Shown here: positions 1-61,365 of the stretch, in pieces
Position numbering within the stretch: the first letter of the stretch is position 1
How the letters are laid out: each line of letters starts with the position of its first letter
NCBI GenBank assembly: GCA_047495785.1
Contig: JBLDXI010000042.1
Coordinates: 1,240,001-1,304,000, forward strand
From: Lepidodermella squamata
Taxonomy: Eukaryota > Animalia > Gastrotricha
Direction of reading: 5' to 3'
Length of the DNA stretch: 64,000 nucleotides
Program-made: the position numbers and the translations under genes
The notes under the pieces: model-generated
Told to the model about the DNA's origin: nothing
What the model saw: the letters and a program-made list of their open reading frames with translations, nothing else
The model's database searches: none

Positions 1-147
1 CTACCAAGTTGCAGATTTCATGCCTCCAAGTTTTCAACCACATTTTTAAGTCATCGGTTCAAATATTCGCAATCTCATTTCCATATGCACAGAAAAATTA
101 CATATAACAAAATAACAAAAACAATACTAAATTTTAAAGGAAAAAAA

Positions 148-226
148 TGTGTCGCGGCCGGGACTCGAACCCTCCATTAACTGCATTTCACAACGTTACA
201 CCGTAACCACTCGGCCGCACAACACA
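148..226 (-). pseudogene. tRNA-like / Pol III cassette (degenerate cloverleaf)
   Basis: Minus strand: TGTGTTGTGCGGCCGAGTGGTT...GAGGGTTCGAGTCCCGGCCGCGACACA followed by T7. A-box-like and B-box motifs with self-complementary ends; anticodon and T stems pair poorly. Confidence 0.6.
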
Positions 227-610
227 TCTGACTTATGCATTGCAAATCAATATAAAAATATTAGATGAGAAAAAGAAAAATCAAAAAAGTTTCCAGCTTC
301 TTCCGGGAATCGAACGCGTCTTAATCACTATATAGTTCGCTTCGCTTAGGCATTGGTTCGATTACTGCTCTCGTCACGTTTTTGCATTTCATTTTTTTCT
401 TCTTAACATTTCAAATCAGATTAATTCCTGTACAAATTTTTGCAGAATGAGCAATAAAACTCGAACGTTTACCATTCACGTGAATTTTCATGAGTACAAA
501 GTGCATGCCTGTCATATGGCCGACACGCGATTCACCATCAGCTGTTTCGCGGCGCAGCGGCGGCAACAGCAAGCAGACGGTTCGATCCGGTATTCAAGCT
601 TCATTCACAA

Positions 611-1225
611 CGATTTAATTGTCTTGAAAACAAGCTCTATTTCCTTAAACATTAGAATTACTTATGCTGCTAGCTACAATCAATCCATCTTCCGCTCGAA
701 TCGATAACAGTGTGACAATGCTGCTGGCTAAGGTTTGCTAGTATATTATTGCCAGTTCATATCACTTTTCTCACTTTTCCCATGATTACAGCTACTGGAT
801 GAAATGGCTATTTCAAAACTGTTGTCGCCTTTGGTTTTCCATGGTCACTACTTACTACCAGAAAGCGGTGAGTACATTTTTTTCCCCATTGATTTTATTT
901 ACTATAGTGAATTTATTACGATTTATTTCTCTTGAAAACAAGCTCTTATTCCCTGACCACTGAAATTGGTAATGCTGCCCGCGCTCAAATCATTCCATTT
1001 TCCACGATGAATCGTTGACAGCGTTACTTTTCTGCAGTCTCAGGTTTGCTAGTCTATGATTTCGAGTTCATTTCAATATTCCCATTATGATAAAGAAACT
1101 GGATCAAATGGTGATTTCGAAAGTGTTTCCGGCTTCGGTTGTCAACGAGCAATACTTACTCTCAGAAAACAGTGAGTACATTTTTTTCCTCATTAATTTT
1201 ATTTGTAGTAAATTTTATTGATTTT
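611..1225. repeat. Degenerate ~305-bp direct duplication (unit 1 only)
   Basis: CGATTTA.TT.TCTTGAAAACAAGCTCT at 611 and 919; AGGTTTGCTAGT at ~731 and ~1042; CAGAAA...GTGAGTACATTTTTT near 860 and 1163. Units 2-4 have a single copy. Confidence 0.8.
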
Positions 1226-1241
1226 TTTTCATTCATTAACA

Positions 1242-4200
1242 CGTTTTTTCGCTCTGTATTATTTTCTTTCATCGTTATGCTCTCGTTATCGACGTTTTCG
1301 CCATCAACAAAGTCGATTCAAGCAATCCCTGTCATTCAACTGTACTTTAATAAATTTTTTTCAAGAATTTTTTCAAACTTTGAAATTCCAAACGAGGGTC
1401 GTAGGTTGGCGCCCGGCCTCTCGTTTTTTCGCTCTGTATTATTTTCTTTCATCGTTATGCTCTCGTTATCGACGTTTTCGCCATCAACAAAGTCGATTCA
1501 AGCAATCCCTGTCATTCAACTGTACTTTAATAAATATTTTTCAAGAATTTTTTCAAACTTTGAAATTCCAAACGAGGGTCGTAGGTTGGCGCCCGGCCTC
1601 TCGTTTTTTCGCTCTGTATTATTTTCTTTCATCGTTATGCTCTCGTTATCGACGTTTTCGCCATCAACAAAGTCGATTCAAGCAATCCCTGTCATTTAGT
1701 TGTACTTTAATAAATTTTTTTCAAGAATTTTTTCAAACTTTGAAATTCCAAACGAGGGTCGTAGGTTGGTGCCCGGCCTCTCGTTTTTTCGCTCTGTATT
1801 ATTTTCTTTGATCGTTATGCTCTCGTTATCGACGTTTTCGCCATCAACAAAGTCGATTCAAGCAATCCCTGTCACTCAGTTGTACTTTAATAAATTTTTT
1901 TTAAGAATTTTTTCAAACTTTGAAATTCCAAACGAGGGTCGTAGGTTGGCGCCCGGCCTCTCGTTTTTTCGCTCTGTATTATTTTCTTTCATCGTTATGC
2001 TCTCGTTATCGACGTTTTCGCCATCAACAAAGTCGATTCAAGCAATCCCTGTCATTCAGTTGTACTTTAATAAATTTTTTTCAAGAATTTTTTCAAACTT
2101 TGAAATTCCAAACGAGGGTCGTAGGTTGGCGCCCGGCCTCTCGTTTTTTCGCTCTGTATTATTTTCTTTCATCGTTATGCTCTCGTTATCGACGTTTTCG
2201 CCATCAACAAAGTCGATTCAAGCAATCCCTGTCATTCAACTGTACTTTAATAAATTTTTTTCAAGAATTTTTTCAAACTTTGAAATTCCAAACGAGGGTC
2301 GTAGGTTGGTGCCCGGCCTCTCGTTTTTTCGCTCTGTATTATTTTCTTTCATCGTTATGCTCTCGTTATCGACGTTTTCGCCATCAACAAAGTCAATTCA
2401 AGCAATCCCTGTCATTCAGTTGTACTTTAATAAATTTTTTTTAAGAATTTTTTCAAACTTTGAAATTCCAAACGAGGGTCGTAGGTTGGTGCCCGGCCTC
2501 TCGTTTTTTCGCTCTGTATTATTTTCTTTCATCGTTATGCTCTCGTTATCGACGTTTTCGCCATCAACAAAGTCGATTCAAGCAATCCCTGTCATTTAGT
2601 TGTACTTTAATAAATTTTTTTCAAGAATTTTTTCAAACTTTGAAATTCCAAACGAGGGTCGTAGGTTGGTGCCCGGCCTCTCGTTTTTTCGCTCTGTATT
2701 ATTTTCTTTGATCGTTATGCTCTCGTTATCGACGTTTTCGCCATCAACAAAGTCGATTCAAGCAATCCCTGTCATTCAGTTGTACTTTAATAAATTTTTT
2801 TTAAGAATTTTTTCAAACTTTGAAATTCCAAACGAGGGTCGTAGGTTGGCGCCCGGCCTCTCGTTTTTTCGCTCTGTATTATTTTCTTTCATCGTTATGC
2901 TCTCGTTATCGACGTTTTCGCCATCAACAAAGTCGATTCAAGCAATCCCTGTCATTCAACTGTACTTTAATAAATTTTTTTCAAGAATTTTTTCAAACTT
3001 TGAAATTCCAAACGAGGGTCGTAGGTTGGTGCCCGGCCTCTCGTTTTTTCGCTCTGTATTATTTTCTTTCATCGTTATGCTCTCGTTATCGACGTTTTCG
3101 CCATCAACAAAGTCAATTCAAGCAATCCCTGTCATTCAGTTGTACTTTAATAAATTTTTTTTAAGAATTTTTTCAAACTTTGAAATTCCAAACGAGGGTC
3201 GTAGGTTGGTGCCCGGCCTCTCGTTTTTTCGCTCTGTATTATTTTCTTTCATCGTTATGCTCTCGTTATCGACGTTTTCGCCATCAACAAAGTCGATTCA
3301 AGCAATCCCTGTCATTTAGTTGTACTTTAATGAATTTTTTTCAAGAATTTTTTCAAACTTTGAAATTCCAAACGAGGGTCGTAGGTTGGTGCCCGGCCTC
3401 TCGTTTTTTCGCTCTGTATTATTTTCTTTGATCGTTATGCTCTCGTTATCGACGTTTTCGCCATCAACAAAGTCGATTCAAGCAATCCCTGTCATTCAAC
3501 TGTACTTTAATAAATTTTTTTTAAGAATTTTTTCAAACTTTGAAATTCCAAACGAGGGTCGTAGGTTGGCGCCCGGCCTCTCGTTTTTTCGCTCTGTATT
3601 ATTTTCTTTCATCGTTATGCTCTCGTTATCGACGTTTTCGCCATCAACAAAGTCGATTCAAGCAATCCCTGTCATTCAACTGTACTTTAATAAATTTTTT
3701 TCAAGAATTTTTTCAAACTTTGAAATTCCAAACGAGGGTCGTAGGTTGGCGCCCGGCCTCTCGTTTTTTCGCTCTGTATTATTTTCTTTCATCGTTATGC
3801 TCTCGTTATCGACGTTTTCGCCATCAACAAAGTCGATTCAAGCAATCCCTGTCATTCAGTTGTACTTTAATAAATTTTTTTCAAGAATTTTTTCAAACTT
3901 TGAAATTCCAAACGAGGGTCGTAGGTTGGCGCCCGGCCTCTCGTTTTTTCGCTCTGTATTATTTTCTTTCATCGTTATGCTCTCGTTATCGACGTTTTCG
4001 CCATCAACAAAGTCGATTCAAGCAATCCCTGTCATTTAGTTGTACTTTAATAAATTTTTTTTAAGAATTTTTTCAAACTTTGAAATTCCAAACGAGGGTC
4101 GTAGGTTGGTGCCCGGCCTCTCGTTTTTTCGCTCTGTATTATTTTCTTTCATCGTTATGCTCTCGTTATCGACGTTTTCGCCATCAACAAAGTCGATTCA

Positions 4201-4282
4201 AGCAATCCCTGTCATTCAGTTGTACTTTAATAAATTTTTTTCAAGAATTTTTTCAAACTTTGAAATTCCAAACGAAGGTCGT
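1242..4282. repeat. 180-bp tandem satellite, type A, ~17 monomers
   Basis: Exact 180-bp period (AACGAGGGTC at 1391, 1571 ... 4091; final variant at 4271). Confidence 0.98.
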
Positions 4283-4537
4283 TGTTTAAAATTTTGGAAT
4301 ATTGGAATTTTCAATTCTTCATTTGCATTTAGTTGTATTTTCATGTCTTTTCTTATGTTTACCAGCTTGCGAATCGAATGACCGAATGATGCACCTGTGA
4401 AATGGCTGAAACCTGTCAAATCAAATGGCTGAAAACGATTTCAAGACGTGAAATTCATGTGATTTTTGATTTTTCAAACTAGTCCAGCTTTGATTCTTTA
4501 TATTGTAATTATATTGTTCCAAACCCCATTTTCGCCG

Positions 4538-4832
4538 ACCCAGGCAGTAATAGGGTAGAGATGCCGTCTCAATGCTCGGCTATGCAGTTAAATAGCCAAC
4601 CGACGTTGGAATAGTCGGTATAAACTTCCACCGTCCCGGCTCAGACGGCGAAAACGACCACGTCTTGGTGAGACGGTAAAAAAAACTCCGACAAGGCAAG
4701 GTCGGAAAAAAACTTCCAAAATGTCCGCAGGGCTGAGCGACCAGCGCCCTCACTGTGATTCGTCACAAATAACAAGCTGGAAGGGAACCTATGACGATCT
4801 GTCAGGCATCTTCGGATCCGAGGTTTCTCCCC
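4538..4832 (+). ncRNA. Candidate structured RNA (or ssDNA) element upstream of the transposase ATG (unit 1)
   Basis: About 12 nested stems, e.g. TGCCGTCTC/GAGACGGTA enclosing GGCTAT/ATAGCC, ACCGAC/GTCGGT, CCGTC/GACGG and ACCA/TGGT; TCCGAC/GTCGGA; CTTCCA/TGGAAG enclosing AGGGC/GCCCT and TGTGA-TTCG-TCACA; GAACCT/AGGTTT enclosing TGAC/GTCA and ATC-TTCG-GAT. Confidence 0.55.
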
Positions 4833-4983
4833 GATATTTCAATCATTGATGTGCATTTGTAATTTCAATAAAATATTTTTCAAATTTCACAATATATTTT
4901 TTAATTGATAATTCGCATATGATGTTATTATTTATTTTCCTAGTTTTTTTATGATGAGAATTTTATGATTATGAACTGGAATC

Positions 4984-7900
4984 ATGGTGAAACCGCCTAA
5001 TTGGAAGCCAAAATCGAAGGGACCGCGTAAATGTTCCTTTTGCAAACGGAAACGTGTTCAAATCTCAACCCACTGCGGACTAGTCAATTGCCCTAAAGCT
5101 AAAGGGCAACACCATCCCAAGCCATGCATTAAGGTTCAAGCTCCACCTTCTCAGTCCAATTGTAAGTTTTCCTAATCAATCAGTTATATATGTTTCATCT
5201 GTTTTTACACAGCCACGTCGTGTTCGCATGCTGGCGAATCTTTATCGCTAGCTCCATCCTCACTCGCTGTTCAGAATACGTCTGAGCAGTCGTTGATATC
5301 TCAAGGCTTGTTCTTGTTATTCATCCTCAAATTGTATAAATTTGCGATAAAATTTCCCCATAGGTAGCAGCGCTGTTCTGACTGCTTCGGAGCAATTGTT
5401 GGCTTCTCAAGGTCAGTAATCTTTATTTTTCAACTATAACTTGACATGTAGCTGTGCTTTTCCAGCTGTTCCGGCTACCCGGGAAGATCCGCTGCCACCT
5501 TCGGGTTAGTTGTTAGATTGAGATTTCTTTCATGTCTTCAGCGAATACCACTAAGCTCTTTTAAGAATTGAAGAGATGTTAACATATGATTGTTATGTCA
5601 TTCAGTCTTGTCAAATAATATCTTTTCAGGCGCTTCTTTGAACGATCGGCAGGAATCTAACGTTGGAGCGCCTGCAACACGTCAGCCAGTAACTCAGCCA
5701 TCTTGTCCAGTATGCGGCGCAATAGGGAGGAAGTATCTGACCCACTGCGACAATGAGGAATGCCGGATTAGTGGCCGCGGGCATCACGCTAATCCCTGTT
5801 TCCAGTTGGAACGACCCGGGCTCCAGGCCGGTATAAATCTTGAGCAGCAACGTAAGTATTATCCACCTGGTAACAACCTTTCATAAATAATGATTCATTT
5901 AGCTGTGGCGTCCTCTGGAGCTGTTGCTGCTACGTCAGAACGATCGCTGCCATCTATTGGTTAGTTATTTTATTCAATAATGTGCTGCCTGGTGTTAACT
6001 AAAACTGCTGTTTGTTGCAGCTAGTGGTTGTTCTTCTAATGCACCTATTCTATGTGACAACTGCAAAAGACGATCGGTGCCCTTTTTCGACATCGACATT
6101 GCTGCAGTCGAAGAGCCGGTATCTGGACGCAGCTATGGTGCTCTAACAGTGCGGCATGTCTACGAAAATTGTTCTCTGTGCCGTTGTTGTCGTCACTATT
6201 TGCGGAACGGCGATGCTCGTTTTCCCGCCGGATGGCCAGCTCTTGTTTACAGCCTCTTCTTTGAAGCATCAAATAGACATCTAGCTCAGGCCCTCTCGCA
6301 CTGCATCTCGCCGACCATGAAACTCATGTGGAGCGAGGCCGACGGCTCACGAGTTATGCGCGACTCCCAGCCCTGGTTTGTCGACAAGACGCGCGAGCTT
6401 GCTGATTTCATGGCCAATATTTACAGAGACGCCGGTATGCTACCTACCGATATGATTATTCGAATTGAATTGTTTTTCAATGCAGGGGGATTCAGTTACG
6501 CGCTGAACACCTACCCAGTGCCCGACGTGATATGCCCTCAAGGCTGCCTCGCGTTCATGGAGAAGTGCCAGCTTATCCCGTACCACCATTTCATCCAACA
6601 TGTTACTGGCAGCAATTTCTTCGATTCTGACTTGCGCTGGTTCGAGTCAAGGCGACCCGACTGGCCGTGCAACCCAGTGCCTTTCCTCGCTTGGGATTTC
6701 GCTGCTGCAATGGTCATGGACGAGAACAAGGGTCTATGCATTCTTGCCTGCATTGACCACAGCAAGCCTGACTTGTTTTCCATGTACCTGCATTTGCCTG
6801 TGAATCCCGAGTTTGATCGATTTCAAGATCCACAGCAGACCGAAATCTATGCACCCGTGCACGTGCAGCCGAATTTCGTGAGAGGAGGGCGCGTCGGTCA
6901 GTCCAACGCATCAGTGCCAGTGACGAAGACTGTCGGCGATCCGTTTGGGGTTGGTAGTTTTACTCTGCGTGGTGCCCACTCGGCAAACCGCAAGCCTCTC
7001 AGCATCTATGACAGTGCCTTCAAACCCCACCTTCTGGCCTTGCGATACCGCCCAGAGATTCGCAACACAGCAATCAGCAGATTCGGCGAGGAACACGTGG
7101 CTAACGTTCTTGCTGATTTCGATCAGCACTGCCCAACTGCTGTTGTCAGAAGCCACGTCAAGGGTGGCACTTTCATCGAATTAGCTGACTCCTTCTTCAC
7201 CTGGGCTGTTCGCCGTAAAATCGCAACAGGTTAGCAAATTTTCTTTCCGATGTTGGTTACTTTAAATTTAACATTTAAATATTCCTTTAAATTTAACATT
7301 TAAATTAAATTTATGCGGTGTCTCAAATGTTCAGATTTTAGTTTACTTTTTCTTATTTCAGGTACTGATTCGTCGAAAAAAGGGAAAGCGCCTTCAGAAG
7401 GCCTGATCTTCAATCCAGTTCACCCGAATGATGATCATGGCTTAATCCCTTGGGCGTTCAAGTCGAGTCGAGGTGATAACCCCAGTCAGCTCCTCACGCT
7501 TGTCGCCAACGTGGCGTTGTTGTGCAGGCCTGTGTACCGTGCTTCGTTGTCCCACCTGGTGCTTGGCAGTCCCGATTTAGCACGCGTCGACATCGGTGAC
7601 TTGCTCAGTCATACAGTTTCGCTGCCGCGCCCGAAAACCCCTCGTACTCTGAAGCTGTCGCACCTGGCAAGGGACTTCTGGGCACTGACTGAACCCGAAA
7701 GTGATAGCGGATCTGACGATGACGAAGAATCCCCCGATGTCGTTATTCGGGCATTAACCTTGATTGGGAGAATTACTGCGCCGATTAATGATGTCGAGTT
7801 GTCGTTTGGTGGATCTGATCTTTTGACGATCAGGAAGGGGCAAATGATGGATGGCGAAGGAAGGAGTCTCAGAAGTCATGGTGAGTGTTTTATTCATATT

Positions 7901-10900
7901 TTGGCAGTTTTTGTTGCAATATTATACTTGTTTGGTGATATCCAGCATGGTCTTGGGCTCTAAATTTCCAAATTTCCAAGTTTTAATCACAAATTGAGGG
8001 CTACCATGTAAGATTTAATGACGTAAATCTTCAAAAATTGAGTAATTCCCAAATGCTTTTATTCAGAACTTCATAACGCATGTTTATTTCGTCTTTTTGT
8101 TTTACAGTGGGCAGGGTTCTGGTCATGCACGAAGGTCGATCTCAGCTGCTGACCGAATTCCAGTCTTCGCGTGAGCTGCTGCTGTGCCGTCCTGAAGGTG
8201 CCTTGCCGATCAAATGGCCTGCATTGCCTTTGTCGCTGAAAGCTGGGCATCACCTTCTACTTGCCGGCGTCAAGTTTGGCTCGAAATCCTACATCGTTTT
8301 TCGATGGTCACCTAGCTTCAGTGGCTGGTGGACAGTAGAGCCTAGCGGACGAGTGGTTCGTGGTGTCAGCGATCAGCACATGCGCTCTGACGTCCAATTT
8401 GCGATTTACGCTCTGCCTGGCAACCAGACCTTCTGCAATCAGGCCGTGCGTCAATCGCTAGGTGGCCAGAGCAAGGCGGCATGCGAAATGCACTACGACT
8501 CCGTCGAGTTCAACTTCACCCTGATGAAAGTGCCTGCCAAGCATAAGGTGAAGTGTTGCTTGCGATTGCCGGGAAGAGCTAATCAATGCGGCAAACCTGC
8601 TCAGTTGCGTTGTCCTGCTGGCTTGCAGAATGGCAGCATGTCGTGCAGTGTCGGCATCTGCCCGCGGTGCTTCAAAAAGCTTTCAGCGAACAGCATCACC
8701 AAGCTCTCAGCACCCGACTTTCTGCCTGATTTGCCTGAAGATGCTGAACTGCAACTGTCAGCTAGTAGGGTATCCAACTTGGAAGCTGAAGTTGATGAGG
8801 TCTTGCCCCAGCCTGAGCAGCTTGATTTGGCTGCTGATATTCAATTTCCTCGAGGTGATGTAGAGCCGCTCTACGACCCCACCAAGGGGATTCTCGCGAA
8901 GTACCTCTGGCAGCACCTGGGAATTCTGCAGCGAACCAGGCTTGCTTTCGATTCTGCCCAAAAGTCCTTTCTTCTGCAACAAATGGTTGGTTTTGGTGAT
9001 GCGCCGGCAACATCTGTTTTGTTCCCAGAAGGTGCCTTGTTCCCGTCGCTTTTCTATTACCAACGAGATGGTAGTGTTGTTGGTGCTTTGCCTTACCACC
9101 ACTACTCGTCGAACGCATCAGGCTATACTAGTGGAATCGGCTCGCTGTCTGATCATGTTAAAGTGAGACTCCGCAACTTCTTGTTGGCAACAAGCTGGTC
9201 TTTTGCGTCGCTCTACTTTTCCTTTGACATGAAGTTATCGGCGCAGCTGAACAGAAATAGCACGGCAATTTTCATGAAGCGTGGGACAGAAGGCCTGGCG
9301 GGTAAAGGCGCTGTTGGCTGGTCTCCTCCTGGCACTGCTTTGGAATACGAGGAGTTCGACAAGGAGTCGAGACTAAAGGAACTTGGCGCTCTAATCAAGC
9401 ATGAAGAATGGAAGTGGTTCGGGACAATTACCTGCAATGATACAGGTTGGGAAACGTTTTAGTATTAACTAGGTATTAGATCGGTCGTCGCTTCGAACCC
9501 AAGCTCTCGTTCAAGATTTCTCCAATGATTTCTATAATCCATAGGCTTTCTTTCTCGGCGTTGACGTCATCAGCGACATTGATTTAACCTGTCAATGTTG
9601 TTCATTTGTACTCATAGTTGTACCCATTGCAGCATTAGTCAATTTGACATTTTTATTTTCTGAGAAATATAATTTGCTTCCTTTTATTCCCAGGGACACC
9701 GGGCGTATGTGAAATCGTTAAGGCCCTCATGATAAACGCTCAAAGGCACCATGGTCCACGCCCTGTTCTGTCGAAGGCCGACTATCAGCGAACTTTTCGT
9801 CAGCGTCTGCTCCTTGTTTCAAGGCTTGACGAGACCGAGTACAAGCGGCTGTACTACGCCCATTTCATCCTCATCAGCATGGCTTGGCAACGAGTGCAGG
9901 AGCATCTGATCGAGTTCCTGAAGCGCACGAATGTAGTTGGCACGGTCACCACTATTTTCGTCAGGAACGAATTTCAGAGCGAATCACTCGTTGGAAACAA
10001 AAGTCATCTGCATATGGGCATTTCAGTACGCGAAAGCCGGGCAGAACTGATGGAGAAAGTTTGCTGTGATCCTCGTGAATTCTTCTCGGAGCGGTACGGC
10101 ACGTCATTCGACGAGCTTCAGCGCTTGAGGTTGGTCGAGAGCCGGGATCACTTCGAGCTGCTCAAGGAGGTCCATTACCCTTTCCAACGTCACGAATGCG
10201 AGAAAGCGTTTTGGAAATGTCAAGTTCCACGCGGCGAAGGAGGGGAAATGGTTTGCCGAGTTCGCCAGCACGGCGTCTCCAGCAGCGGCTATTTTGAAGA
10301 ATTCCGCAACCTGTACTCCGAGGATACCCTGAAAGAGCTGCAATCCCTAGACCTCGCCAGAGAAGTGCCCAATCCCACTGGCGACTTTGACTGGGAATTT
10401 CTGGCTGATCAGCTCAAGTCGGGCGTGTACCACTACGCGATCAAGCATCTCGAGAAGGGAGTGAAGTTCATTCCGCAAATCCCGATCATCGCGGCAATGA
10501 TGGGCGGCTCCACGAACTTCCAGATTTGCGATTCTCATTTTAGCGTATCTTACCTGACGAGCTACGTTGCCAGCTCCGACGCTCGCCCTGAAGCTTACGC
10601 TGCAACGACAGATGTTCCGGGCCAGGTCGTTGCTTTGTTCCCTGCTGGTTTTGAGCGAGGTCAAAAGCTTGCTAGTGTGCGGTGAGTTTTATCTTTTCAG
10701 CGTTTATCGACCTAAAAAAACTTGCATATTTTTCAGAAAAGTGATGGAGGCAAAGCTGAAACACTTTCGTCGTGAAAGCATGCAAAGCTTCATCTTCATC
10801 GCCTTGACGGAAGTTGCATGGTTCGCGTTGAGTTTTCCCTACACCATCACAAACGTCGGTTTCGTTCACATCAACACGCACCCTCCAGCGTCGCGGCTGA

Positions 10901-13900
10901 TGTTGTGGCGACCGAAGCAAGCAGTGAAACGTAGACTTCCAGGTATGATTAATCTTACAATTAGTATATTTTCACATAATATTTCCCCAAATAGGAACTG
11001 ATGTCGCTGCTGTTGACCCAAACTACAATCGTCGGGGCTTGCCACAGTGGCGCTTATTCACGGAAGCGGTCATTCGCCTCATAATGAAGTTGAAAGGCAC
11101 GAATCTGCACGCCGGCCCTGTCGAGAAATTCGAAATTCGGCCTCCCGAGGCTCGTATCTTTGCCTCACCTGCTATCTACCACGCGGTGTTCGTCATTGAC
11201 CGAAAAAACTGGCGACCATACAACCCGATGGCCGATCCTTACATCCGCTTTTTCGACGGTTTCAAGCGGGAGGTCCGAATCAACGATTGCAGTTTGCGCA
11301 TCGCGCTCGACTATCTGGCTCAGCAGGACCAATCCAATGCAGCCGTTCAAGCACTCACGGAAATTTTCGAACTCTTGGTCGAAGGCGATCCTGTCTATGT
11401 TGACCGGTAACGATCTTTACGTTTTTTTAATTTCCGGAATATTTCAAATGTACGCTGAACTAGGTACTTGCACGTCACAAATAAGGCGGCGATAATTCCA
11501 GTCCTATCCACCATCTCTCCGCTCAACCGCTTCAACTTCTTGTATCACGTTGTCATGACGTTTGGTCGAATCGAAGATGAGGCTACTACCTTTCCGGCTG
11601 GGCATCTCCGGGCGGCATTTGTTCGATCGGGGCTCATTCGGGTCAATCCTGAAGGCGAGCCGACCAACCTTCCTGCCGACGTGAGGTCTCTGAAGCGTCG
11701 CGTCATTCTCGAAATCTTCGCTTTCCTGCCAATCGGTGTCAAGAGATTCGATTTTTACGTCGCCACTCTGAAATCCATGTTCGAGCAGTTTTTCTTTGGC
11801 GATGGAGGCACCGACAATCTCTCGGCACTGACTGACTGGGATGCGATTGAACGGGAAGTTGACGAGGATATTGTCCGAGCGGAAGGAGAAATGAAGCGGT
11901 CTGTGGTTGAGGTGACGCATTCGCAGCTTGTCGGGAAATTGCCGCTACCACCGCTGTCGGATTTCACTGACGCTACATCGTGTCAACCTTTGGAATGGAT
12001 TCCGAGTCTTCAACGACAACCAGGTCAGTCGGACCAGTCTTTCCAGGAGCAGCAGGCGGCTCTGGCTTTCGGTATGAAGACACTCGAACGCTTCCGAAGC
12101 AGAGCTAGCTTCAAGCACATCGCACTGGTTGGTCCTCCTGGGGCTGGAAAGACAACGCTGGCGCAGATCCTTGCCATGGTTGCCGTTTCTAAGGGACTAC
12201 GAGTTGTCATTACTGCTTTGACCTCGGAGCGAGCACGAGTTCTTGGCGGTCGGCACATCCACTTGCTTTTTCCTTTGCCGGTTAAGCAAATACCGTACAA
12301 AAATGTAATGGCGTATGCTGACGGCTGCCTCAAGAATCTGTGTTTCAAGACTACGCCGTCTGTTGTCCTATATCGGGCTGACGTCTTCATCATCGAAGAA
12401 ATTGGGCTGGTCTCTGCTGAAACCCTGGAAATCTTGGACACAGTTATGAGGAGTCTTACAGGTAAGCAAACCAGCATTTAATTATTACTGGTATTTATAG
12501 TTTTCGTTAGGAGTCGATGCGAAAATGGGTGGCAAATTGATCATTGCTACCGGGGACTTTGCTCAGCTCGAGACGATCAATGGTGAGAGTTGATTTATTG
12601 CAATACTAACATGTATATTGTATTTGTTTTTTTTAATTATCCCAGGTCGATCCTTTTGGGAATCAACACAATTGTACCTCAGCTACGACGTCGCATTGTT
12701 GAAACATTTCGTTCGGGCTGCCACTGACCCGCTACTCCAGCGGGTGCTGTTGATTTTGCGGCAAGGCGTTCTTGACGAGATTGACCGGGACTTCATCCTC
12801 AAAGCTGTGACTAGAACGTGCAACTTTTACGACACTTGGGACAACGTTCCGTTCCTTGTCCAGCGGATCGTCCCAACAAGAGAAGCTGAACAAGAGGTTA
12901 GTTGGAAACGGAAAATTTTGGTGATCACTCTTGCCTTTCATTAATTGATCAGGTCATTCGGAAGTTCCTGCAAGACGCTAGTCTCAGTGGCAAGACTTTG
13001 AAAACAGCTCTATGCATCGACGAAGTAAACACGCGTGGTGCCTGGGAACCTCTTCACCGTCCCGAATGGAAAAAAGCTATCAACAAACAGTCACTCAAGC
13101 CCGAGAACTTAACGCTCTTTGTTGGTGCTGTGGTTGCTATGACCTACAATCACGTAGCGTCGAACCCGCAACACTCCTTCTCCCAAGGGCAGCTAGCTTT
13201 GGTGACGCAGTTGCCGGAAGACATGGCAGCACCGGATGCCAAAATTTCTGTCCGCTTGGTTCCTCCAGGGCTGCGTGACATTGCACCAGATGAGGCTTGG
13301 CCAGAAATAAGTGTGGGCCGGCATCGGGACGATAACGTTGTTGTTGGCGACAACAAAACGCACCTGCGTCGTGTTCAGTTTCCGCTGCGGCATTACATTG
13401 CCTCGACTATTCATCGTGAGTGCTAACCTTGTTTTTATATTCAAGTATATAAAAATGTTAATTGTTTTCAGGAATCATGGGTTCTACCTGCGAGAACGGC
13501 GTTGCGGCCAAGATTTCTTCCAACGAGAAGGTACGTATTGCGAATAATAACTGTCGATATTGATATGTTCAATGTACTGTAATGAAGGGCTACGTGCTAT
13601 GGGAACGGGCGCAGCTTGCTGTCATTCTCTCGCGGTGCCGTTCACTTGACCGTGTGTCATTTGTTGGCGAACGCGCAGACATCACTGTGGCCATCGAAAG
13701 GCTGTTGATGGCAGTCGATGAGCCATACGAGGCTATCGTCGCATCGCTGCAAACGCTGGACGTGCTGCCTACCTCAACAGTCGCCAGTAACTGGTCAGCC
13801 CGACGACAGCAGCAGGTCAGCGACCCCGACGAACTGCCCGACATCACGTTCCGCGTTTTACGAACAACTTCCGGGTTAGTCCACTTACTTATTTGGCGCT

Positions 13901-14949
13901 TTGTATAGTCAACTCACTAATTGCGTATGTCCCATTATATATCGAGTCTTGACAGTTCACATTTCTATAACCATTTTATTATATTTCAAAATAGAATAAG
14001 TCGAACGTTTTCAAGAAAATTTTTCTTATAGATCATTCACGATCGAGCAGCTTGGCGATGCTCAAACTTCCATCCCATTGTAAGTATGGCATTGTTCATC
14101 TGCTTTATATACTATTCAAAACTTCTTCATAGGCCTGCAACCGTTGACCAGGCAAGCTCCTCCGATGCGCCTGTTGCGCCTGTCCCACGGTTAGTATAAC
14201 CTATCAATTCCTTTTCATTGCTTAAAATTCTGCTCAATTTATCAGAGTGCCGACATTGTTGGACTTCTACCGCGTCGTCGGTCCTGATTTGTCGGAACGC
14301 GAGCCCAATGGCGTCGTCTATCAATTGGTGGAGGTGGCTCAGCCGTGGGCCAGCTACTTTGGCGAAACCGAGCAAGCGCCTCTACAGCGACTTTATGACC
14401 ACAATCACAGTAAATACAAGAGAGACTAAAAAAATCGAACTGCTAACATTTGATTTCAGATGCAGGGGCCGCGATGACTCGCGGCAAGCAATGGCATTTG
14501 TACGCCGTCGCTCGTGGCTTGCCTGATGACGAAACCAGGTTGAACCTGGAGAAAAGGTGCCAGGACCTTATTACAGCGCAACCTGAGCTTTTGCCGTGGC
14601 AAGTTAGGACCAAATTTGAGTCCTACGTGGACGACATCAACGCTCGCCTGCATGGGTCCACTGCTGTAATTCGTTACGGCGAGTTGGACGAGGCTAAGGT
14701 TCACCGCCTGCGTATGATCTCCTTGTGAGTCAGCTGATGGATGTCATTCTTTTTACTCAATCCTTTCACTTTTCAGCACGTCGACAATTAGAGTAGCACC
14801 GGCGCCACCGTCAGCGCAAGAAGAAGCAGGTGAACTAATCGACCAAGATCCGCCCCCAAAGCGGTAAATAGATTTAAGTTCACATTTGCTTGTAGCTTTT
14901 TACTATTATTTTCAGAATTCATCTCGCAAATAATTGTTCGCCGTCTTGA
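4984..14949 (+). CDS. Spliced RepHel transposase, ~2,680 aa: tandem Cys/His fingers + HUH Rep + PIF1-like helicase + C-terminal GIY-YIG nuclease (unit 1)
   Basis: 25 hand-assembled exons: 4984-5161, 5213-5305, 5364-5411, 5466-5504, 5630-5851, 5903-5959, 6021-6434, 6486-7229, 7362-7880, 8108-9445, 9694-10681, 10737-10942, 10995-11406, 11464-12461, 12511-12582, 12646-12896, 12953-13415, 13472-13530, 13588-13874, 14032-14079, 14133-14189, 14246-14409, 14460-14724, 14777-14863, 14916-14949. Total 8,043 nt, phases compatible at every junction, no internal stop. All introns GT-AG except intron 2 (GC-AG). Splicing restores helicase motifs split across exons (MGGKLIIATGDFAQL; TIHRIMGST). Confidence 0.85.
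5032..5799 (+). other. Two N-terminal Cys/His putative zinc fingers (5032-5127 and 5704-5799)
   Basis: CSFCKRKRVQISTHCGLVNCPKAKGQHHPKPC and CPVCGAIGRKYLTHCDNEECRISGRGHHANPC share the exact spacing C-x2-C-x8-THC-x4-C-x6-HH-x2-PC. Confidence 0.7.
9415..10580 (+). other. HUH (Y2) Rep endonuclease domain
   Basis: Motif 1 WFGTITCN (Helitron FxTxTCN); motif 2 VRNEFQ...NKSHLHMGI (EFQ...HUH); QRHEC; motif 3 NFQICDSHFSVSYLTSYVAS (YxxxY). The upstream EGALFPSLFY resembles the conserved pre-Rep E..FP.LFP segment. Confidence 0.85.
12110..13670 (+). other. PIF1-like SF1B helicase domain (divergent)
   Basis: Walker A GPPGAGKT (12131-12154), ALTSERARVLGGRHIHLLF, Walker B-like FIIEEIGLVS, MGGKLIIATGDFAQL, LKHFVRAATDP, RVQFPLRHYIASTIHRIMGST, AQLAVILSRCRSL, all in PIF1 order. 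Confidence 0.9.
14307..14560 (+). other. SLX1-like GIY-YIG endonuclease domain (split by intron 14410-14459)
   Basis: Spliced sequence NGVVYQLVEVAQPWASYFGETEQAPLQRLYDHNHNAGAAMTRGKQWHLYAVARGLPDDETRLNLEKR matches the GIY...YIG.T...R...HN...GA..T....W......G........E pattern of SLX1/UPF0213-type nucleases. Confidence 0.75.
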
Positions 14950-15011
14950 TGTTTCTGCCGATCTTCCGATAAATGAAATGTTCCAATTCAATGTTTTTCC
15001 TAGTAGTAGCC

Positions 15012-15017
15012 AATAAA
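15012..15017 (+). promoter_or_regulatory. Putative polyadenylation signal
   Basis: AATAAA about 60 nt after the predicted stop, followed by T-rich sequence; present in all units. Confidence 0.5.
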
Positions 15018-15437
15018 CGTATCGCACTTTTTCTAATAGTGTTTATTGAATCAGAGTTATCAGATCGACTTGACTTAATATGAATCAAATCGCCACGAAA
15101 CCGTAATTTTTCTGATCCTTGTGCTTCGTCCATTATATAATTTTTCTAAAAGATTACCTAACCTCATTGCCATGCTCTTGGCTCTGTGGCAACCGAACCA
15201 TATTCATCTCACAAGTTGGCACTATAGTTGCTTCCGGAACCCACCATAAAGATGACAGATCTTAGTTTCAAGTTTTTCCATTGCATCACCATTGCTAAAT
15301 CAAAATCCATCAAATAAAAATGCTTCCCTGCGTAAATCTATAATTTCAAATCTTAATCACGGAAAATAGGGTTTATATCAAATCAAATCAAACCCAAAGC
15401 ACTGATGAGAATATCAAATTTCAAATGTCATTAACAC

Positions 15438-15620
15438 TGGGGTGAGGGGGAGCCACCGTCCCCTCCAACGACGTGGAGGGGATCTCCAAGGGGTGGTTCG
15501 AGTCCTTACCCATTACCCAGGAGAGTGGAGAAAAAGAAAGAAAAGGCTAGCGCAGCGTAAGCCTTGTCGAACTCTCCTGGATGGGGGCGCGACTCTGGGA
15601 GTTCCGAAGGAACGCCAGTT
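15438..15620 (+). other. Downstream multi-hairpin block (also at 30436-30612, 45429-45607, 60604-60775)
   Basis: Nested stems GGGTGAGG/CCTTACCC, GAGCCACC/GGTGGTTC, TCCCCTCCA/TGGAGGGGA; then CCAGGAGAGT/ACTCTCCTGG enclosing AAGGCT/AGCCTT; then GTTCC-GAA-GGAAC. Contains the B-box-like GGTTCGAGTCC. Confidence 0.65.
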
Positions 15621-15949
15621 CCTTTACACGTGTTTTACACATACGCCGTAGATTACCACGAACGAAGTGAGATTTCATCCCAACAGGGGGGCCCGAGAAC
15701 GCGTTGGTTAACAGGACATTCTCCGATGAAGCCGCCCGATTTATGGTAGTATCCTGGACCCCTCAGGACCTCCCAGAAACTTTTTCAGCTCTAACGGACC
15801 TTCCGTTGATTTTCTAGAAATTAGGACGGTTTTTTCCTATTTTACCGTATTTTTTGGTCACGTGACCCGGAATGGGTAGTATATGAGGGGACAGTAGGAG
15901 GATATGATAAGGACACCAAAAAACTAACCACGCTAACCAGAGTATCCAA

Positions 15950-15992
15950 GCCAGCTGACAGGCTGGCCCCTCGCCCCTGGGGGAGAGGGGCC
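15950..15992. other. GC-rich double hairpin, candidate subterminal signal (in every unit and at 61107-61149)
   Basis: GCCAGC-6-GCTGGC overlapping GGCCCCTC...GAGGGGCC. All 43 nt are invariant in the otherwise diverged copy at 61107. Confidence 0.6.
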
Positions 15993-16407
15993 TACAATAA
16001 ATCAACAATGCTAGCTGGCGACCAAAGAGCAAACGACGAAAAGGCAATATACGTAAAAGTCAAGGTCAATTGAACAATTCTGCGGCGAATAAATTGTGCA
16101 TTTTCCATATACAACAATAGGTTTACATGTAATCGACAACGGAGAATCCGAATATGACGTTCATTTTGTTATGAAGCAATTATAACCCAATGATAGCCCC
16201 TCCAACTAATTTTTCTGTTCACTGCTATGGAGTTGGCATGGTTATATTTTTTATTAAATAACATAATGCAGTTCAAGTTTCAGGGCTCGAAGTTTTAAAG
16301 CACATTTTTAAGTGAGCGGTTCAATAACGCACTGTCTTATTTCCATATTCATATGCATGCGCAGAAACAAAAAAAAATAATAATAACAATAAAAAATTAA
16401 AAGAAAA

Positions 16408-16484
16408 TGTGTCGCGGCCGGGACTCGAACCCTCCATTAACTGCATTTCACAACGTTACACTGAAACCACTCGGCCACAACACA
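16408..16484 (-). pseudogene. tRNA-like / Pol III cassette (unit 2)
   Basis: Minus strand A box TGGCCGAGTGG, B box GGTTCGAGTCC, then TTTTCTTTT. Confidence 0.6.
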
Positions 16485-17199
16485 TCTGACATATCCATCG
16501 CAAATTAAATTTCAATTAAATATTCAACGAAATTATCAAAACAGTTTCCAGCGCCTTCCGGGAATCGGACGCGTCTCTATATAATTTATTCACTATATAA
16601 TTCGCTACGCAGTGGTTCGGAAGGCAGTGGTTCGATTGCTGCTCACATCACATTTTTCCTTCTCATTTTTTCTTCTTAAAATCAGATTTATTTCTGTTTA
16701 ATTTTTTTGCAGAGTGAGCAATAAAAAATAAACGTTTACCATTCACGTGAATCTTCATGAGTACAAAGTGCATGCCTGTCATATGGCCGACACGCGATTC
16801 AGCATCAGCTGTTTCACGGCGCAGCGGCGGCAACAGCAAGCAGACGGTTCGATCCGGTATTCAACCATCATTCACAACGATTTATTTCTCTTCAAAACAA
16901 CCTCTATTTCCCTAATCATTAGAATTACTTATGCTGCCAGCTCCTATCAATCTATCTTCCGCTCGAATCGATAACATTGTGACAATGTTGCTCTCTCAGG
17001 TTTGCTAGTATATTATTCCCAGTTCATATCACCATTCCCACTATAATTACAGCTACTGGATGAAATGGCGATTTCAACACTGTTGTCCACTTTGGTTTTC
17101 CATGGTCACTACTCCCTACCAGAAAGCGGTGAGTACATTATTTTCCTCATTCATTTTTTTTACTATTGTAAAATTTATTGATTTTTTCATTCATTAACA

Positions 17200-19158
17200 C
17201 GTTTTTTTTGCTCCCCAATATTTTCTTTCGTCGTTATGCTCCCGTATTCGACGTTTTCGCCATCAGCAACGTCGATTCCACTAATTCATGTCATTTAATT
17301 TTACCCTGATTTACTTTTTTCAAGAATTTTTTCAAACTTTGAAATTCCAAACCAAGGTCGTAGGTTGGTGCCCGACCTCTCATTTTTTCGCCCTCAAATA
17401 TTTTCTTTCATCGATATGCTCCCGTTCTCGACGTTTTCGCCATCAGCAACGTCGATTCCACTAATTCATGTCAATTAATTTTACCCTGATTTACTTTTTT
17501 CAAGAATTTTTTCAAACTTTGAAATTCCAAACCAAGGTCGTAGGTTGGTGCCCGACCTCTCATTTTTTCGCCCTCAAATATTTTCTTTCATCGATATGCT
17601 CCCGTTCTCGACGTTTTCGCCATCAGCAACGTCGATTCCACTAATTCATGTCAATTAATTTTACCCTGATTTACTTTTTTCAAGAATTTTTTCAAACTTT
17701 GAAATTCCAAACCAAGGTCGTAGGTTGGTGCCCGACCTCTCATTTTTTCGCCCTCAAATATTTTCTTTCATCGATATGCTCCCGTTCTCGACGTTTTCGC
17801 CATCAGCAACGTCGATTCCACTAATTCATGTCAATTAATTTTACCCTGATTTACTTTTTTCAAGAATTTTTTCAAACTTTGAAATTCCAAACCAAGGTCG
17901 TAGGTTGGTGCCCGACCTCTCATTTTTTCGCCCTCAAATATTTTCTTTCATCGATATGCTCCCGTTCTCGACGTTTTCGCCATCAGCAACGTCGATTCCA
18001 CTAATTCATGTCAATTAATTTTACCCTGATTTACTTTTTTCAAGAATTTTTTCTAACTTTGAAATTCCAAACCAAGGTCGTAGGTTGGTGCCCGACCTCT
18101 CATTTTTTCGCCCTCAAATATTTTCTTTCATCGATATGCTCCCGTTCTCGACGTTTTCGCCATCAGCAACGTCGATTCCACTAATTCATGTCAATTAATT
18201 TTACCCTGATTTACTTTTTTCAAGAATTTTTTCAAACTTTGAAATTCCAAACCAAGGTCGTAGGTTGGTGCCCGACCTCTCATTTTTTCGCCCTCAAATA
18301 TTTTCTTTCATCGATATGCTCCCGTTCTCGACGTTTTCGCCATCAGCAACGTCGATTCCACTAATTCATGTCAATTAATTTTACCCTGATTAACTTTTTT
18401 CAAGAATTTTTTCAAACTTTGAAATCCCAAACCAAGGTCGTAGGTTGGTGCCCGACCTCTCATTTTTCGCCCTCAAATATTTTCTTTCATCGATATGCTC
18501 CCGTTCTCGACGTTTTCGCCATCAGCAACGTCGATTCCACTAATTCATGTCAATTAATTTTACCCTGATTTACTTTTTTCAAGAATTTTTTCAAACTTTG
18601 AAATTCCAAACCAAGGTCGTAGGTTGGTGCCCGACCTCTCATTTTTTCGCCCTCAAATATTTTCTTTCATCGATATGCTCCCGTTCTCGACGTTTTCGCC
18701 ATCAGCAACGTCGATTCCACTAATTCATGTAAATTAATTCTACCCTGATTTACTTTTTTCAAGAATTTTTTCAAACTTTGAAATCCCAAACCAAGGTCGT
18801 AGGTTGGTGCCCGACCTCTCATTTTTTCGCCCTCAAATATTTTCTTTCATCGATATGCTCCCGTTCTCGACGTTTTCGCCATCAGCAACGTCGATTCCAC
18901 TAATTCATGTCAATTAATTTTACCCTGATTTACTTTTTTCAAGAATTTTTTCAAACTTTGAAATCCCAAACCAAGGTCGTAGGTTGGTGCCCGACCTCTC
19001 ATTTTTTCGCCCTCAAATATTTTCTTTCATCGATATGCTCCCGTTCTCGAAGTTTTCGCCATCAGCAACGTCGATTCCACTAATTCATGTCAATTAATTT
19101 TACCCTGATTTACTTTTTTCAAGAATTTTTTCAAACTTTGAAATTCCAAACGAAGGTC
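17200..19158. repeat. 180-bp tandem satellite, type B, ~11 monomers
   Basis: 180-bp period (one 179-bp monomer). About 84% identical to type A with no indels. Confidence 0.98.
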
Positions 19159-19404
19159 ATTTTTTTGAATTTTAGAATTTCGGAAATTTATATTAGCATT
19201 TCATTTTTTTTTATTTTTTCTCTTTTTTACCAGTTTGCGAATCGAATGACCGATGTTGCACATGCTGTAATCAAATGGCTGAAAACGATTTCAAGACGAA
19301 GTGATTTGTGATTTTTCAAACGTGCTACTTCATTTGAACGTTGTTTACCAGCTTTGCTGTATGATGCTTTTTAAATTATATTGTTCCAAACCCCATTTTC
19401 GCTG

Positions 19405-19699
19405 ACCCAGGCAGTAATAGGGTAGAGATGCCGTCTCAATGCCCGGCTATGCAGTTAAATAGCCAACCGACGTTGGAATAGTCGGTATAAACTTCCACCG
19501 TCCCGGCTCAGACGGCGAAAACGACCACGTCTTGGTGAGACGGTAAAAAAAACTCCGACAAGGCAAGGTCGGTAAAAAACTTCCAAAATGTCCGCAGGGC
19601 TGAGCGACCAGCGCCCTCACTGTGATTCGTCACAAATACTAAGCTGGAAGGGAACCTATGACGATCTGTCAGGCATCTTCGGATCCGAGGTTTCTCCCC
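19405..19699 (+). ncRNA. Candidate structured element (unit 2)
   Basis: About 5 substitutions versus unit 1 in and next to the block, almost all in unpaired linkers. Confidence 0.55.
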
Positions 19700-19858
19700 G
19701 ATATTTCAATTATTGATGTGCATTGGTAATTTCAATAAAATATGTTTTTCATTTCAATATATTTTTTTTAATTGATGTTCTTCATTCCATTCGCATATGG
19801 TGTTATTTTTTATTTATCTAGTTTTATGATGACAATTTTGTGATTATGAACTGGAATC

Positions 19859-34397: not shown

Positions 34398-34692
34398 ACC
34401 CAGGCAGTAATAGGGTAGAGATGCCGTCTCAATGCCCGGCTATGCAGTTAAATAGCCAACCGACGTTGGAATAGTCGGTATAAACTTCCACCGTCCCGGC
34501 TCAGACGGCGAAAACGACCACGTCTTGGTGAGACGGTAAAAAAAACTCCGACAAGGCAAGGTCGGTAAAAAACTTCCAAAATGTCCGCAGGGCTGAGCGA
34601 CCAGCGCCCTCACTGTGATTCGTCACAAATACTAAGCTGGAAGGGAACCTATGACGATCTGTCAGGCATCTTCGGATCCGAGGTTTCTCCCC
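34398..34692 (+). ncRNA. Candidate structured element (unit 3)
   Basis: Copy of the unit 2 block. Confidence 0.55.
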
Positions 34693-49572: not shown

Positions 49573-49867
49573 ACCCAGGCAGTAATAGGGTAGAGATGCC
49601 GTCTCAATGCCCGGCTATGCAGTTAAATAGCCAACCGACGTTGGAATAGTCGGTATAAACTTCCACCGTCCCGGCTCAGACGGCGAAAACGACCACGTCT
49701 TGGTGAGACGGTAAAAAAAACTCCGACAAGGCAAGGTCGGTAAAAAACTTCCAAAATGTCCGCAGGGCTGAGCGACCAGCGCCCTCACTGTGATTCGTCA
49801 CAAATACTAAGCTGGAAGGGAACCTATGACGATCTGTCAGGCATCTTCGGATCCGAGGTTTCTCCCC
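49573..49867 (+). ncRNA. Candidate structured element (unit 4)
   Basis: Copy of the unit 2 block. Confidence 0.55.
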
Positions 49868-60115: not shown

Positions 60116-60752
60116 TGTTTCTGCCGATCTTCCGATAAATGAAATGTTCCAATTCAATGTTTTTCCTAGTAGTAGCCAATAAACGTATTGCACTTTTTCT
60201 AATAGTGTTTATTGAATCAGAGTTATCAGATCGACTTGACTTAATATGAATCAAATCGCCACGAAACCGTAATTTGTCTGATCCTTGTGCTTCGTCCATT
60301 ATATAATTTTTCTAAAAGATTACCTAAGCTGATTGCCATGCTCTTGGCTCTGTGGCAACCGAACCATATTCATCTCACAAGTTGGCACTACAGTTGCTTC
60401 CGGAACCCACCATAAAGATGACAGGTCTTAGTTTCAAGTTTTTCCATTGCATCACTATTGCTAAATCAAAATCCATCAAATAAAAATGCTTCCCTGCGTA
60501 AATCTATAATTTCAAATCTTAATCACGGAAAATAAGGTTTATATCAAATCAAATCAAACCCAAAGCACTGATGAGAATATCAAATTTCAAATGTCATTAA
60601 CACTGGGGTGAGGGGGAGCCACCGTCCCCTCCAACGACGTGGAGGGGAACTCCAAGGGGTGGTTCGAGTCCTTACCTATTACCCAGGAGAGTAGAGAAAA
60701 AGAAAAGGCTAGCGCAGCGTAAGCCTTGGAACTCTCCTGGATGGGGGCGCGA

Positions 60753-61365
60753 TATGAGAGTTCCGAAGGAACGTAGTTCCTTACAAGTGTTTTACACATA
60801 CGCCGTAGATTACCACGAACGAAGTGAGATACCTTCCGAAAGGCACCCCCCGGGAACGAGTTGGTTAATAGGACATACTCAGATCAACTTACCCGATTTA
60901 TGGTGGTATCCTGGACCCCTCAGGACCTCCCAGAAGTTTTTTCAGCTCAATCGGAGCTTCCGTTGATTTTCTAGAAATTAGGACGGTTTTTTCTTATTTT
61001 ACCGTATTTTTTGGTCACGTGACCTGAAATGGGTAGTATATGAGGGGACAGTAGGAGGATATGATAGGTACACCAAAAAACAAACCACGCTGACCAAAGC
61101 TTCCCAGCCAGCTGACAGGCTGGCCCCTCGCCCCTGGGGGAGAGGGGCCCACAATAGATCAACAATGCAAGCTCGCGACTAAAGAGCAAACGACAAAAAG
61201 GCAATATAAATAAAATGCAAGGTCAATTGAAAAGACGTGAGGCAAATAAATTGTGAATTATGCATTTAAAGCAACAGAATTACCCGTAATCGACTACGGA
61301 GAATCCGAATACGACATTCATTTTGTTAAAGCAATGATAATCCAATGATAATCACTTCAACAAAT
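60753..61365 (+). repeat. Diverged homolog of 15593-16211 (continuation of an older variant of the element)
   Basis: Colinear with 15593-16211 but with many substitutions (roughly 80-85% identical by eye). Homology is lost after ~61365. Confidence 0.85.

Follow-up and report, generated by a model that had tools for sequence, protein, structure and literature searches.

What is the short, GC-rich stretch of non-coding DNA that a mobile element, repeated here in tandem, has nearly unchanged in every copy just ahead of its transposase gene? The window, by which we mean the whole 64-kb stretch of DNA analysed here, contains four head-to-tail copies of a ~15-kb Helitron-like element with a period of 14,867–15,175. 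Units are ordered as a leader of ~1 kb, a 180-bp satellite, ~220 nt of diverged DNA, the GC-rich block, a multi-exon gene and a T-rich 3′ end (Table 1). An earlier note had read the block as a single multi-junction RNA of ~300 nt. As an RNA discovery, the block is weak. The reading that we favor, tentatively and at a little less than an even chance, is that of a control block, either close to the promoter or within the leader, whose palindromes act as DNA and which serves the Rep/helicase/GIY-YIG gene that follows; the block probably includes the untranslated leader of that gene.

Table 1 Features of the tandem Helitron-like element and of the block that precedes its gene (positions within the window)
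Feature	Position	Strand	Description
180-bp satellite, unit 1	1242–4282		16.9 copies, upstream of the block
180-bp satellite, unit 2	17203–19158		10.9 copies; units 2–4 have their own arrays
Conserved GC-rich block	4506–4860		4538–4832 widened to the limits of conservation
Originally reported segment, unit 1	4538–4832		295 nt
Copy of the segment, unit 2	19405–19699
Copy of the segment, unit 3	34398–34692
Copy of the segment, unit 4	49573–49867
TATA-like AT-rich motif	4508–4515	+	Putative, read from the sequence; opens the conserved block, ~30 nt before 4538
Inverted-repeat left arm	4529–4537		9-nt, perfect; partner at 4646–4654; holds the 8-mer shared with the satellite
Hairpin-cluster domain	4562–4678		Closing inverted repeat 4562–4570/4670–4678; palindromes 4578–4597, 4599–4619 and 4631–4648
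Palindrome	4687–4706		6-nt arms, 8-nt spacer; arm core same as in 4599–4619
3′ half of the block	4720–4835	+	TTCG at 4759–4762, CTTCGG at 4810–4815; conserved, no excess structure
Candidate intron	4859–4941	+	83 nt, GT...AG; inferred; diverged AT-rich stretch between block and start codon
Multi-exon gene	4984–15020	+	N-terminal region, Rep (Helitron-like N), PIF1-like SF1 helicase, C-terminal GIY-YIG; 3′ bound approximate
3′ terminal region	16093–16212	+	Ends in a T run

The nature of the element follows from its gene, which we searched exon by exon. The gene is collinear with the RepHel proteins P0004, P0006, P0010, P0013, P0017 and P0018, and the domains of its relatives are OTU, Helitron_like_N, PIF1 and GIY-YIG. 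An open reading frame at 11459–12478 matched AAA_30 with 34 bits (cut-off, 27) and PIF1 with 22.8 bits, revealing that the gene encodes, after Rep, a PIF1-like SF1 helicase, the arrangement by which a Helitron-like element is recognized. Further downstream, the exon at 14226–14426 aligned to the GIY-YIG motif of P0013 (E = 2e-5). The Rep reading frame (8077–9459) retrieved 263 relatives (best E, 1e-75), several of which carry PF14214, and itself gave no Pfam or PDB match at threshold. In a full HMMER search of 1.8 billion representatives the closest protein relatives were 37–40% identical, and a word-based protein search returned one distant match. By its protein, the element is of the group-2 Helitron-like kind (Helentron, Helitron2 and proto-Helentron; PMC11417382, PMC3627910, PMC4067079), while the block itself belongs to no described family.

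The resemblance to group 2 covers the T-rich 3′ boundary and the collinearity of the gene with proteins that combine Rep and a PIF1-like helicase and that have relatives with OTU, Helitron_like_N and PIF1 domains. The 180-bp satellite recalls the internal tandem repeats of Helentrons and their derivatives (PMC4067079, PMC7492417), the extra solo 3′ ends described below recall 3′-biased copies (PMC3627910), and one family of group 2 is known to possess a GIY-YIG domain (PMC11417382). There are also differences. Group-2 elements end in 11–18 nt terminal inverted repeats, a 3′ stem-loop and a T-T boundary (PMC11417382, PMC3627910), but no 11–18-nt terminal inverted repeat was found in the window. 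Unlike Helentrons in the strict sense, the scanned pieces showed a GIY-YIG motif in place of a C-terminal AP-type endonuclease, and the Rep reading frame fell below every Pfam threshold. We found no conserved palindrome-rich block ahead of the RepHel gene described in PMC11417382, PMC3627910 or PMC4067079. Fanzor is known in Helitron2 elements (PMC3627910), but a Pfam scan of 20 reading-frame pieces of the unit identified only P-loop and helicase families, with no RNA-guided nuclease family and none of the RuvC type, whose gene would be expected beside a guide or scaffold RNA of the TnpB/Fanzor kind. One function that had been suggested for the block, a scaffold RNA for the nuclease, is thus not supported; the nuclease of this element is a GIY-YIG domain fused to the Rep/helicase.

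The four units are not equally related. Units 2–4 share >99% mutual identity, and the right half of unit 1 (from 9686) is 98–99% identical to them, whereas its left half (16–9466, compared with 16278–24700) reaches only 82–87%. Judged by this pattern, unit 1 is a chimera of two variants. The last ~670 nt of unit 4 are diverged likewise, and divergence at both of these places is expected at the edges of a homogenized array. In the large reading frames of the unit 1 left half, dS relative to unit 2 is 0.4–0.5 and dN/dS is ~0.11, which implies that the two variants are old and that both have been under purifying selection.

The block is found in all four units, in agreement with its earlier description as conserved, hairpin-rich and non-coding. 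Its 295-nt core is identical among units 2–4 and differs in unit 1 at 4 of 295 positions. It lies inside the element, 124–478 nt before the first ATG (4984) of the long frame and ~3.2 kb from the preceding 3′ end, and no paralogous copy occurs elsewhere in the unit. GC content is 0.515 in 4538–4832 versus 0.318 upstream (4283–4505) and 0.179 downstream (4861–4983), with ranges of 0.49–0.52 for the block and 0.18–0.32 for the flanks, so the GC-richer island in AT-rich DNA that had been reported is real. The helices and loops named along with it also proved to be where they had been placed: the closing helix 4562–4570/4670–4678, the hairpin at 4687–4706 and the TTCG and CTTCGG loops at 4759–4762 and 4810–4815.

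Two other identities for the block were considered and set aside. It is not a special CpG island, as the CpG observed/expected ratio is ~1 everywhere. A protein-coding exon is not supported either: the longest frame in the block spans 85 codons and has no in-frame start near its beginning, and the four substitutions display no third-position bias.

Searches for relatives of the block were negative. None of the 4227 covariance models of Rfam 15 matched at gathering score over the whole window, and at E ≤ 10 the region 4300–5000 gave only chance-level matches to unrelated bacterial or lncRNA models (E, 0.5–10), the best of them scoring 17.6 bits against a gathering score of 39. We therefore reject a known RNA family, and the earlier statement that the block belongs to no recognized one stands. 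Exact-pattern scans, two of metagenome contigs and one of viral contigs, detected no copy of the block outside the window. The contigs of the protein relatives carry little or no upstream DNA. Upstream of the distant relatives L003, L004 and L005 there was no GC-rich hairpin cluster; the single hairpin-dense window upstream of L005 consists of AT-rich low-complexity palindromes.

We next compared folding energies with those of dinucleotide shuffles, using 200 shuffles for the whole 295 nt. Across 4538–4832 the z-score was −1.96 on the plus strand, with 6 of 200 shuffles folding as well, and −1.55 on the minus strand. The background, taken from 300-nt windows over one unit, has a mean z of −0.37 (sd, 1.2), with several coding windows reaching −3 and one 3′ region −4.9. 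The whole block is thus only marginally better than shuffles and no outlier within its unit. Its two halves behave differently, with z-scores of −3.6 (plus) and −4.8 (minus) in the domain 4562–4678, whose bounds were chosen post hoc, versus +0.31 (plus) and +0.59 (minus) in 4720–4835, the part that contains both TTCG loops.

The folding results also speak against one well-defined RNA fold. In the predicted ensemble of 4529–4860, mean pair probabilities were 0.05 for the closing helix, 0.08 for the hairpin 4631–4648 and 0.06 for the CTTCGG stem, and the minimum free energy structure had a frequency of 0.0001; by this model, the fold is ill-defined and the ensemble diffuse. Structured RNA is expected to show strand asymmetry, with G-U pairs favoring the transcribed strand, but here the minus strand had the lower folding energy and, in the 5′ domain 4562–4678, the stronger z-score. 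Plus-strand G-U pairs had been put forward as a sign of RNA, a point that loses its force when folding is equally good or better on the minus strand and every significant hairpin is perfectly Watson–Crick. The proposal of a single ~300-nt multi-junction RNA is not supported, given the diffuse ensemble and an excess of structure that is confined to the first ~150 nt and absent from the TTCG half.

These results weigh on the idea of an independent small non-coding RNA gene of ~300–340 nt, residing in or captured by the element and transcribed by pol II or pol III. Several signals are suitably placed, including the TATA-like motif ~30 nt before 4538 and, soon after the block, an AATAAA at 4866–4871 and a run of five T at 4874–4878, and the block is a GC-rich island. 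However, AT-rich DNA commonly contains such short signals, half of the block shows little or no sign of structure, and neither the relaxed Rfam search of 4300–5000 nor the two metagenome scans and one viral scan produced a family match beyond chance level or a homolog. We consider a small RNA gene very unlikely.

What does distinguish the block is the local density and reuse of short palindromes. Counting perfect hairpins with stems of at least 5 and loops of 3–10 nt, we identified five non-overlapping hairpins within the 150 nt of 4562–4711, compared with a shuffle mean of 0.66 and with none of 2000 shuffles reaching five; this density ranked at the top of 761 windows over positions 1–19158. 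The five hairpins have stems of 5–6 bp and loops of 5–9 nt, all Watson–Crick, and the closing helix 4562–4570/4670–4678 comprises nine pairs, one of them G-T. Hairpins 4599–4619 and 4687–4706 have the same arms and are followed by the same 9-nt tail, whereas their loops differ. The tail forms a direct repeat (4622–4630 and 4710–4718), such that a palindrome-plus-tail module is duplicated at 4599–4630 and 4687–4718. The sequence CCGWC/GWCGG occurs nine times in the 170 nt of 4535–4705, against 1.6 expected, and none of 2000 shuffles matched this count, although these motifs were picked after the hairpins had been seen and their statistics are optimistic. Reuse of arms leads to competing pairings and hence to the diffuse ensemble, and it is more in keeping with a repeated sequence that is recognized as such than with an RNA of unique fold.

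One motif extends beyond the block. Within 4283–19400, the 8-mer at 4529 and its complement at 4647 are confined to the block, with these two occurrences, and to the satellite, with 21. A comparison of actual monomers revealed that the satellite copies of the 8-mer sit in a stretch kept by both diverged satellite variants.

Taken as a control block, the region could work as follows. The apparent multi-junction fold would be the product of a 150-nt cluster of short perfect palindromes, assembled from CCGWC half-sites spaced 8–9 nt apart, the duplicated palindrome-plus-tail module and the satellite-borne 8-mer, which every monomer of the upstream 180-bp satellite also carries. Action would most likely be at the DNA level, with the palindromes as sites for a dimeric DNA-binding protein of either the host or the element. 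The bound protein would then set expression of the gene, and the satellite may supply one of the promoter-proximal motifs in many additional copies. This proposal builds on where the block lies and how well it is conserved, on the density of its hairpins, the reuse of its motifs and the symmetry of its strands, and on the motif shared with the satellite, all of which are observed directly. Protein binding, the promoter role, a transcription start and the intron at 4859–4941 are steps that we infer.

How much weight can conservation bear? Between units 1 and 2 the block differs at 7 of 355 nt with no indels, compared with 74 of 223 nt upstream and 17 of 123 nt downstream, both with indels, and it ends sharply at both sides. 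Farther upstream, at 4361–4492, conserved islands alternate with diverged, indel-rich DNA. Gene conversion, a caveat raised in the earlier note, turned out to be a genuine confounder. Synonymous divergence across the left half of unit 1 is 4–9% in some stretches and 40–50% in others, and at fourfold sites it is 6/95 (~6%) over 4984–6180 but ~45% (40–50%) elsewhere. In the exons adjoining the block, units 1 and 2 differ at 1/23, 3/44 and 2/28 fourfold sites, and the adjoining introns are 92–97% identical. The mosaic of fourfold divergence and the near-identical introns together imply that conversion tracts exist and that one abuts the block. Such a mosaic, read from sequence comparison, points to two long-lived variants that have converted or recombined with each other repeatedly, and the conservation of the block is confounded by these tracts.

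It is therefore conceivable, if unlikely, that the block has no specific function: its near-identity would be that of a recent conversion tract, and its hairpins would have arisen incidentally as small duplications accumulated locally in GC-rich sequence. The low fourfold divergence next to the block, the similarity of the adjoining introns and the duplicated module at 4599–4630 and 4687–4718 all agree with this. So does the comparison with the fourfold sites of 4984–6180, relative to which the block is only weakly more conserved (7/355 versus 6/95; Fisher p = 0.036). In contrast, the 123 nt that separate the block from this low-divergence tract are far more diverged than the block (17/123 versus 7/355, p = 2e-6), both of its ends are sharp, its hairpin density is the highest in 19 kb and drift would not be expected to give block and satellite a motif in common.

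The substitutions themselves add little. All four in 4538–4832 lie in linkers or at a helix end, so the earlier observation that they fall in linkers is literally true, but four changes between two sequence variants have no power to demonstrate a conserved structure: none is compensatory, and one removes the outermost pair of 4687–4706, which is lost in units 2–4.

We also considered whether the block is a structured RNA leader, that is, the first untranslated exon of the RepHel mRNA, with hairpins that control translation in an IRES-like or regulatory manner. The sequence around the block would accommodate such an exon. A TATA-like motif lies ~30 nt before 4538, and conservation stops at a GTAAT kept in all four units and resumes near an AG that every unit has 42 nt ahead of the ATG, making an 83-nt intron at 4859–4941 possible. 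A scanning ribosome would have to bypass 6–12 upstream ATGs, a reason for an IRES-like element; conservation spans the whole block and not the stems alone; the 5′ domain folds with a z-score of −3.6 on the plus strand; and a C-to-T change at 4536 would convert a G-C pair of the repeat 4529–4537/4646–4654 to G-U on the plus strand. On the other hand, the z-score of the whole block is only −1.96 and no outlier in the unit, that of the 3′ half is +0.3, the minus strand is as good or better and the ensemble is diffuse. An RNA with one defined fold would not usually have loops of 8–9 nt or stems that reuse the same sequences, and we found no Rfam match, no compensatory change and no homologs. ATG triplets are not depleted, with 6 in the block versus 4.7 expected and 12 within 4538–4983, which, on sequence grounds, is easier to reconcile with sequence that is not transcribed or is removed than with a leader that ribosomes scan. 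Altogether, we regard a structured RNA leader as rather unlikely, though still the strongest competitor of the control block.

A different possibility arises from the way in which the element presumably moves. Rolling-circle plasmids have hairpin clusters at their single-strand and double-strand origins, and IS200/IS605 elements have subterminal hairpins at their ends; these signals are strand-specific and located at origins or termini. The block is similar in that its short hairpins are clustered and the replicon around it encodes an HUH nuclease, but dissimilar in being internal and strand-symmetric, with no nick-site motif identified. It could be a single-stranded DNA element of the rolling-circle cycle, with hairpins extruded on the displaced strand and read by the HUH Rep or by host priming factors in the manner of an internal origin or of the single-strand origin that the earlier note had listed among its alternatives. 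Such an element is about as unlikely as the absence of any function. The element does encode its own Rep/helicase, a closing repeat surrounds four hairpins with perfect Watson–Crick stems, and the block folded as DNA (4506–4860) gave a z-score of −1.77, with 2 of 100 shuffles as good.

The location of the element ends argues the other way. Four 3′ ends (16212, 61367, ~61474 and ~61952) align to one point and diverge beyond it; 61367 is the 3′ end of unit 4, and ~61474 and ~61952 are extra solo 3′ ends. A 16-nt core (16139–16154) is invariant in six of six 3′ ends, on the plus strand only. A search of the 4 kb downstream and of the window as a whole gave no inverted partner for the 3′ region, and the 5′ terminus was not located. 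The sole defined boundary is the T-rich 16212/16213, near which lies a weak 3′ palindrome of 4–5 bp. Block and boundary are ~3.2 kb apart, so the block is not terminal, and with no inverted-repeat relation to the 3′ end it can be rejected as a left-end terminal cis-element. A single-stranded DNA element is further disfavored by the lack of any sequence relation between the block and the 3′ terminal region, by the two strands folding alike where a strand-specific signal would be expected, and by the absence of such an internal signal from PMC11417382, PMC3627910 and PMC4067079. A more specific version, slightly less probable again, has the cluster 4562–4711 as an internal recognition or priming signal on a single-stranded DNA intermediate, like the single-strand origins of plasmids, with further part-copies carried by the satellite.

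The control block remains our preferred account, and it too meets difficulties. Near-identity extends over all 355 nt, including the loops, the A-rich linkers and the structureless 3′ half, which isolated protein-binding sites would not need; this requires either a conversion tract or denser constraint, such as that on an RNA. In addition, L003, L004 and L005 have no comparable GC-rich cluster, so the arrangement need not be general in the family. A partial precedent comes from ribosomal DNA units, in which spacer sub-repeats duplicate promoter elements. By analogy only, the present locus shares tandem units (here ~15 kb), a sub-repeat array upstream of a promoter-leader block and a short motif common to both. 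It differs in that Rfam detected no rRNA, the gene is a transposase and the shared motif spans only 8–13 nt, with a putative function.

If the block is the control region of this apparently functional and selectively maintained gene, it offers a place to study the expression and regulation of Helitron-like elements, about which little is known, and the motif shared with the satellite suggests that internal satellites may not be mere passengers. Should the hairpins act on single-stranded DNA instead, they would be a new cis-element of the eukaryotic rolling-circle cycle. More notable than the block as an RNA is the locus as a whole, with its four full-length tandem copies, a RepHel gene bearing GIY-YIG and a strongly structured 3′ region.

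That 3′ region, ~200 nt on the plus strand at 15432–15640, is far more structured than the block (z = −4.84, with 0 of 200 shuffles as good) and has counterparts in units 2–4, for example at 60598–60818. It lies past the last exons of the gene, ~570 nt before the 3′ end of the element, and contains 10-bp helices and several G-U pairs on the plus strand, the minus strand being weaker (z = −2.6). A stretch resembling a tRNA T-arm is present at 15497–15507, and the region ends in a run of four T (15636–15639). Its counterpart in the diverged tail of unit 4 is well conserved, with one G-C changed to G-U and one G-U to G-C; no pair is changed on both sides, and there is no Rfam match. Nearer the end, ~220 nt before the 3′ boundary, a GC-rich hairpin with 8-bp arms and a 10-nt loop (15962–15987) is followed within ~10 nt by AATAAA.

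Other observations concern the margins of the units. In the ~1-kb region after each 3′ end there are stretches resembling tRNA T-arms and acceptors on the minus strand (140–230 and 300–330; in unit 2, 16410–16470 and 16548–16575), at which ARAGORN called no tRNA and Rfam gave no match at E ≤ 5. Just before the satellite of unit 1, a segment of ~310 nt is duplicated in tandem (610–928 and 918–1228) at 74% identity, with exon-like ends (GTGAGT donors); its counterpart in units 2–4 is represented by 16877–17187. At the right edge of the array, the last ~80–120 nt of the element occur in three copies within 700 nt (61292–61374, 61391–61474 and 61862–61952), and the solo 3′ ends are followed by mutually similar sequence (72%) that is unlike the sequence after internal 3′ ends. 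Finally, a second and more diverged satellite, which shares ~75% identity with the 180-bp monomer, starts 2.3 kb past the array and occupies 63704–64000, which suggests, from sequence similarity, a further older or different element whose own block would lie beyond the window.
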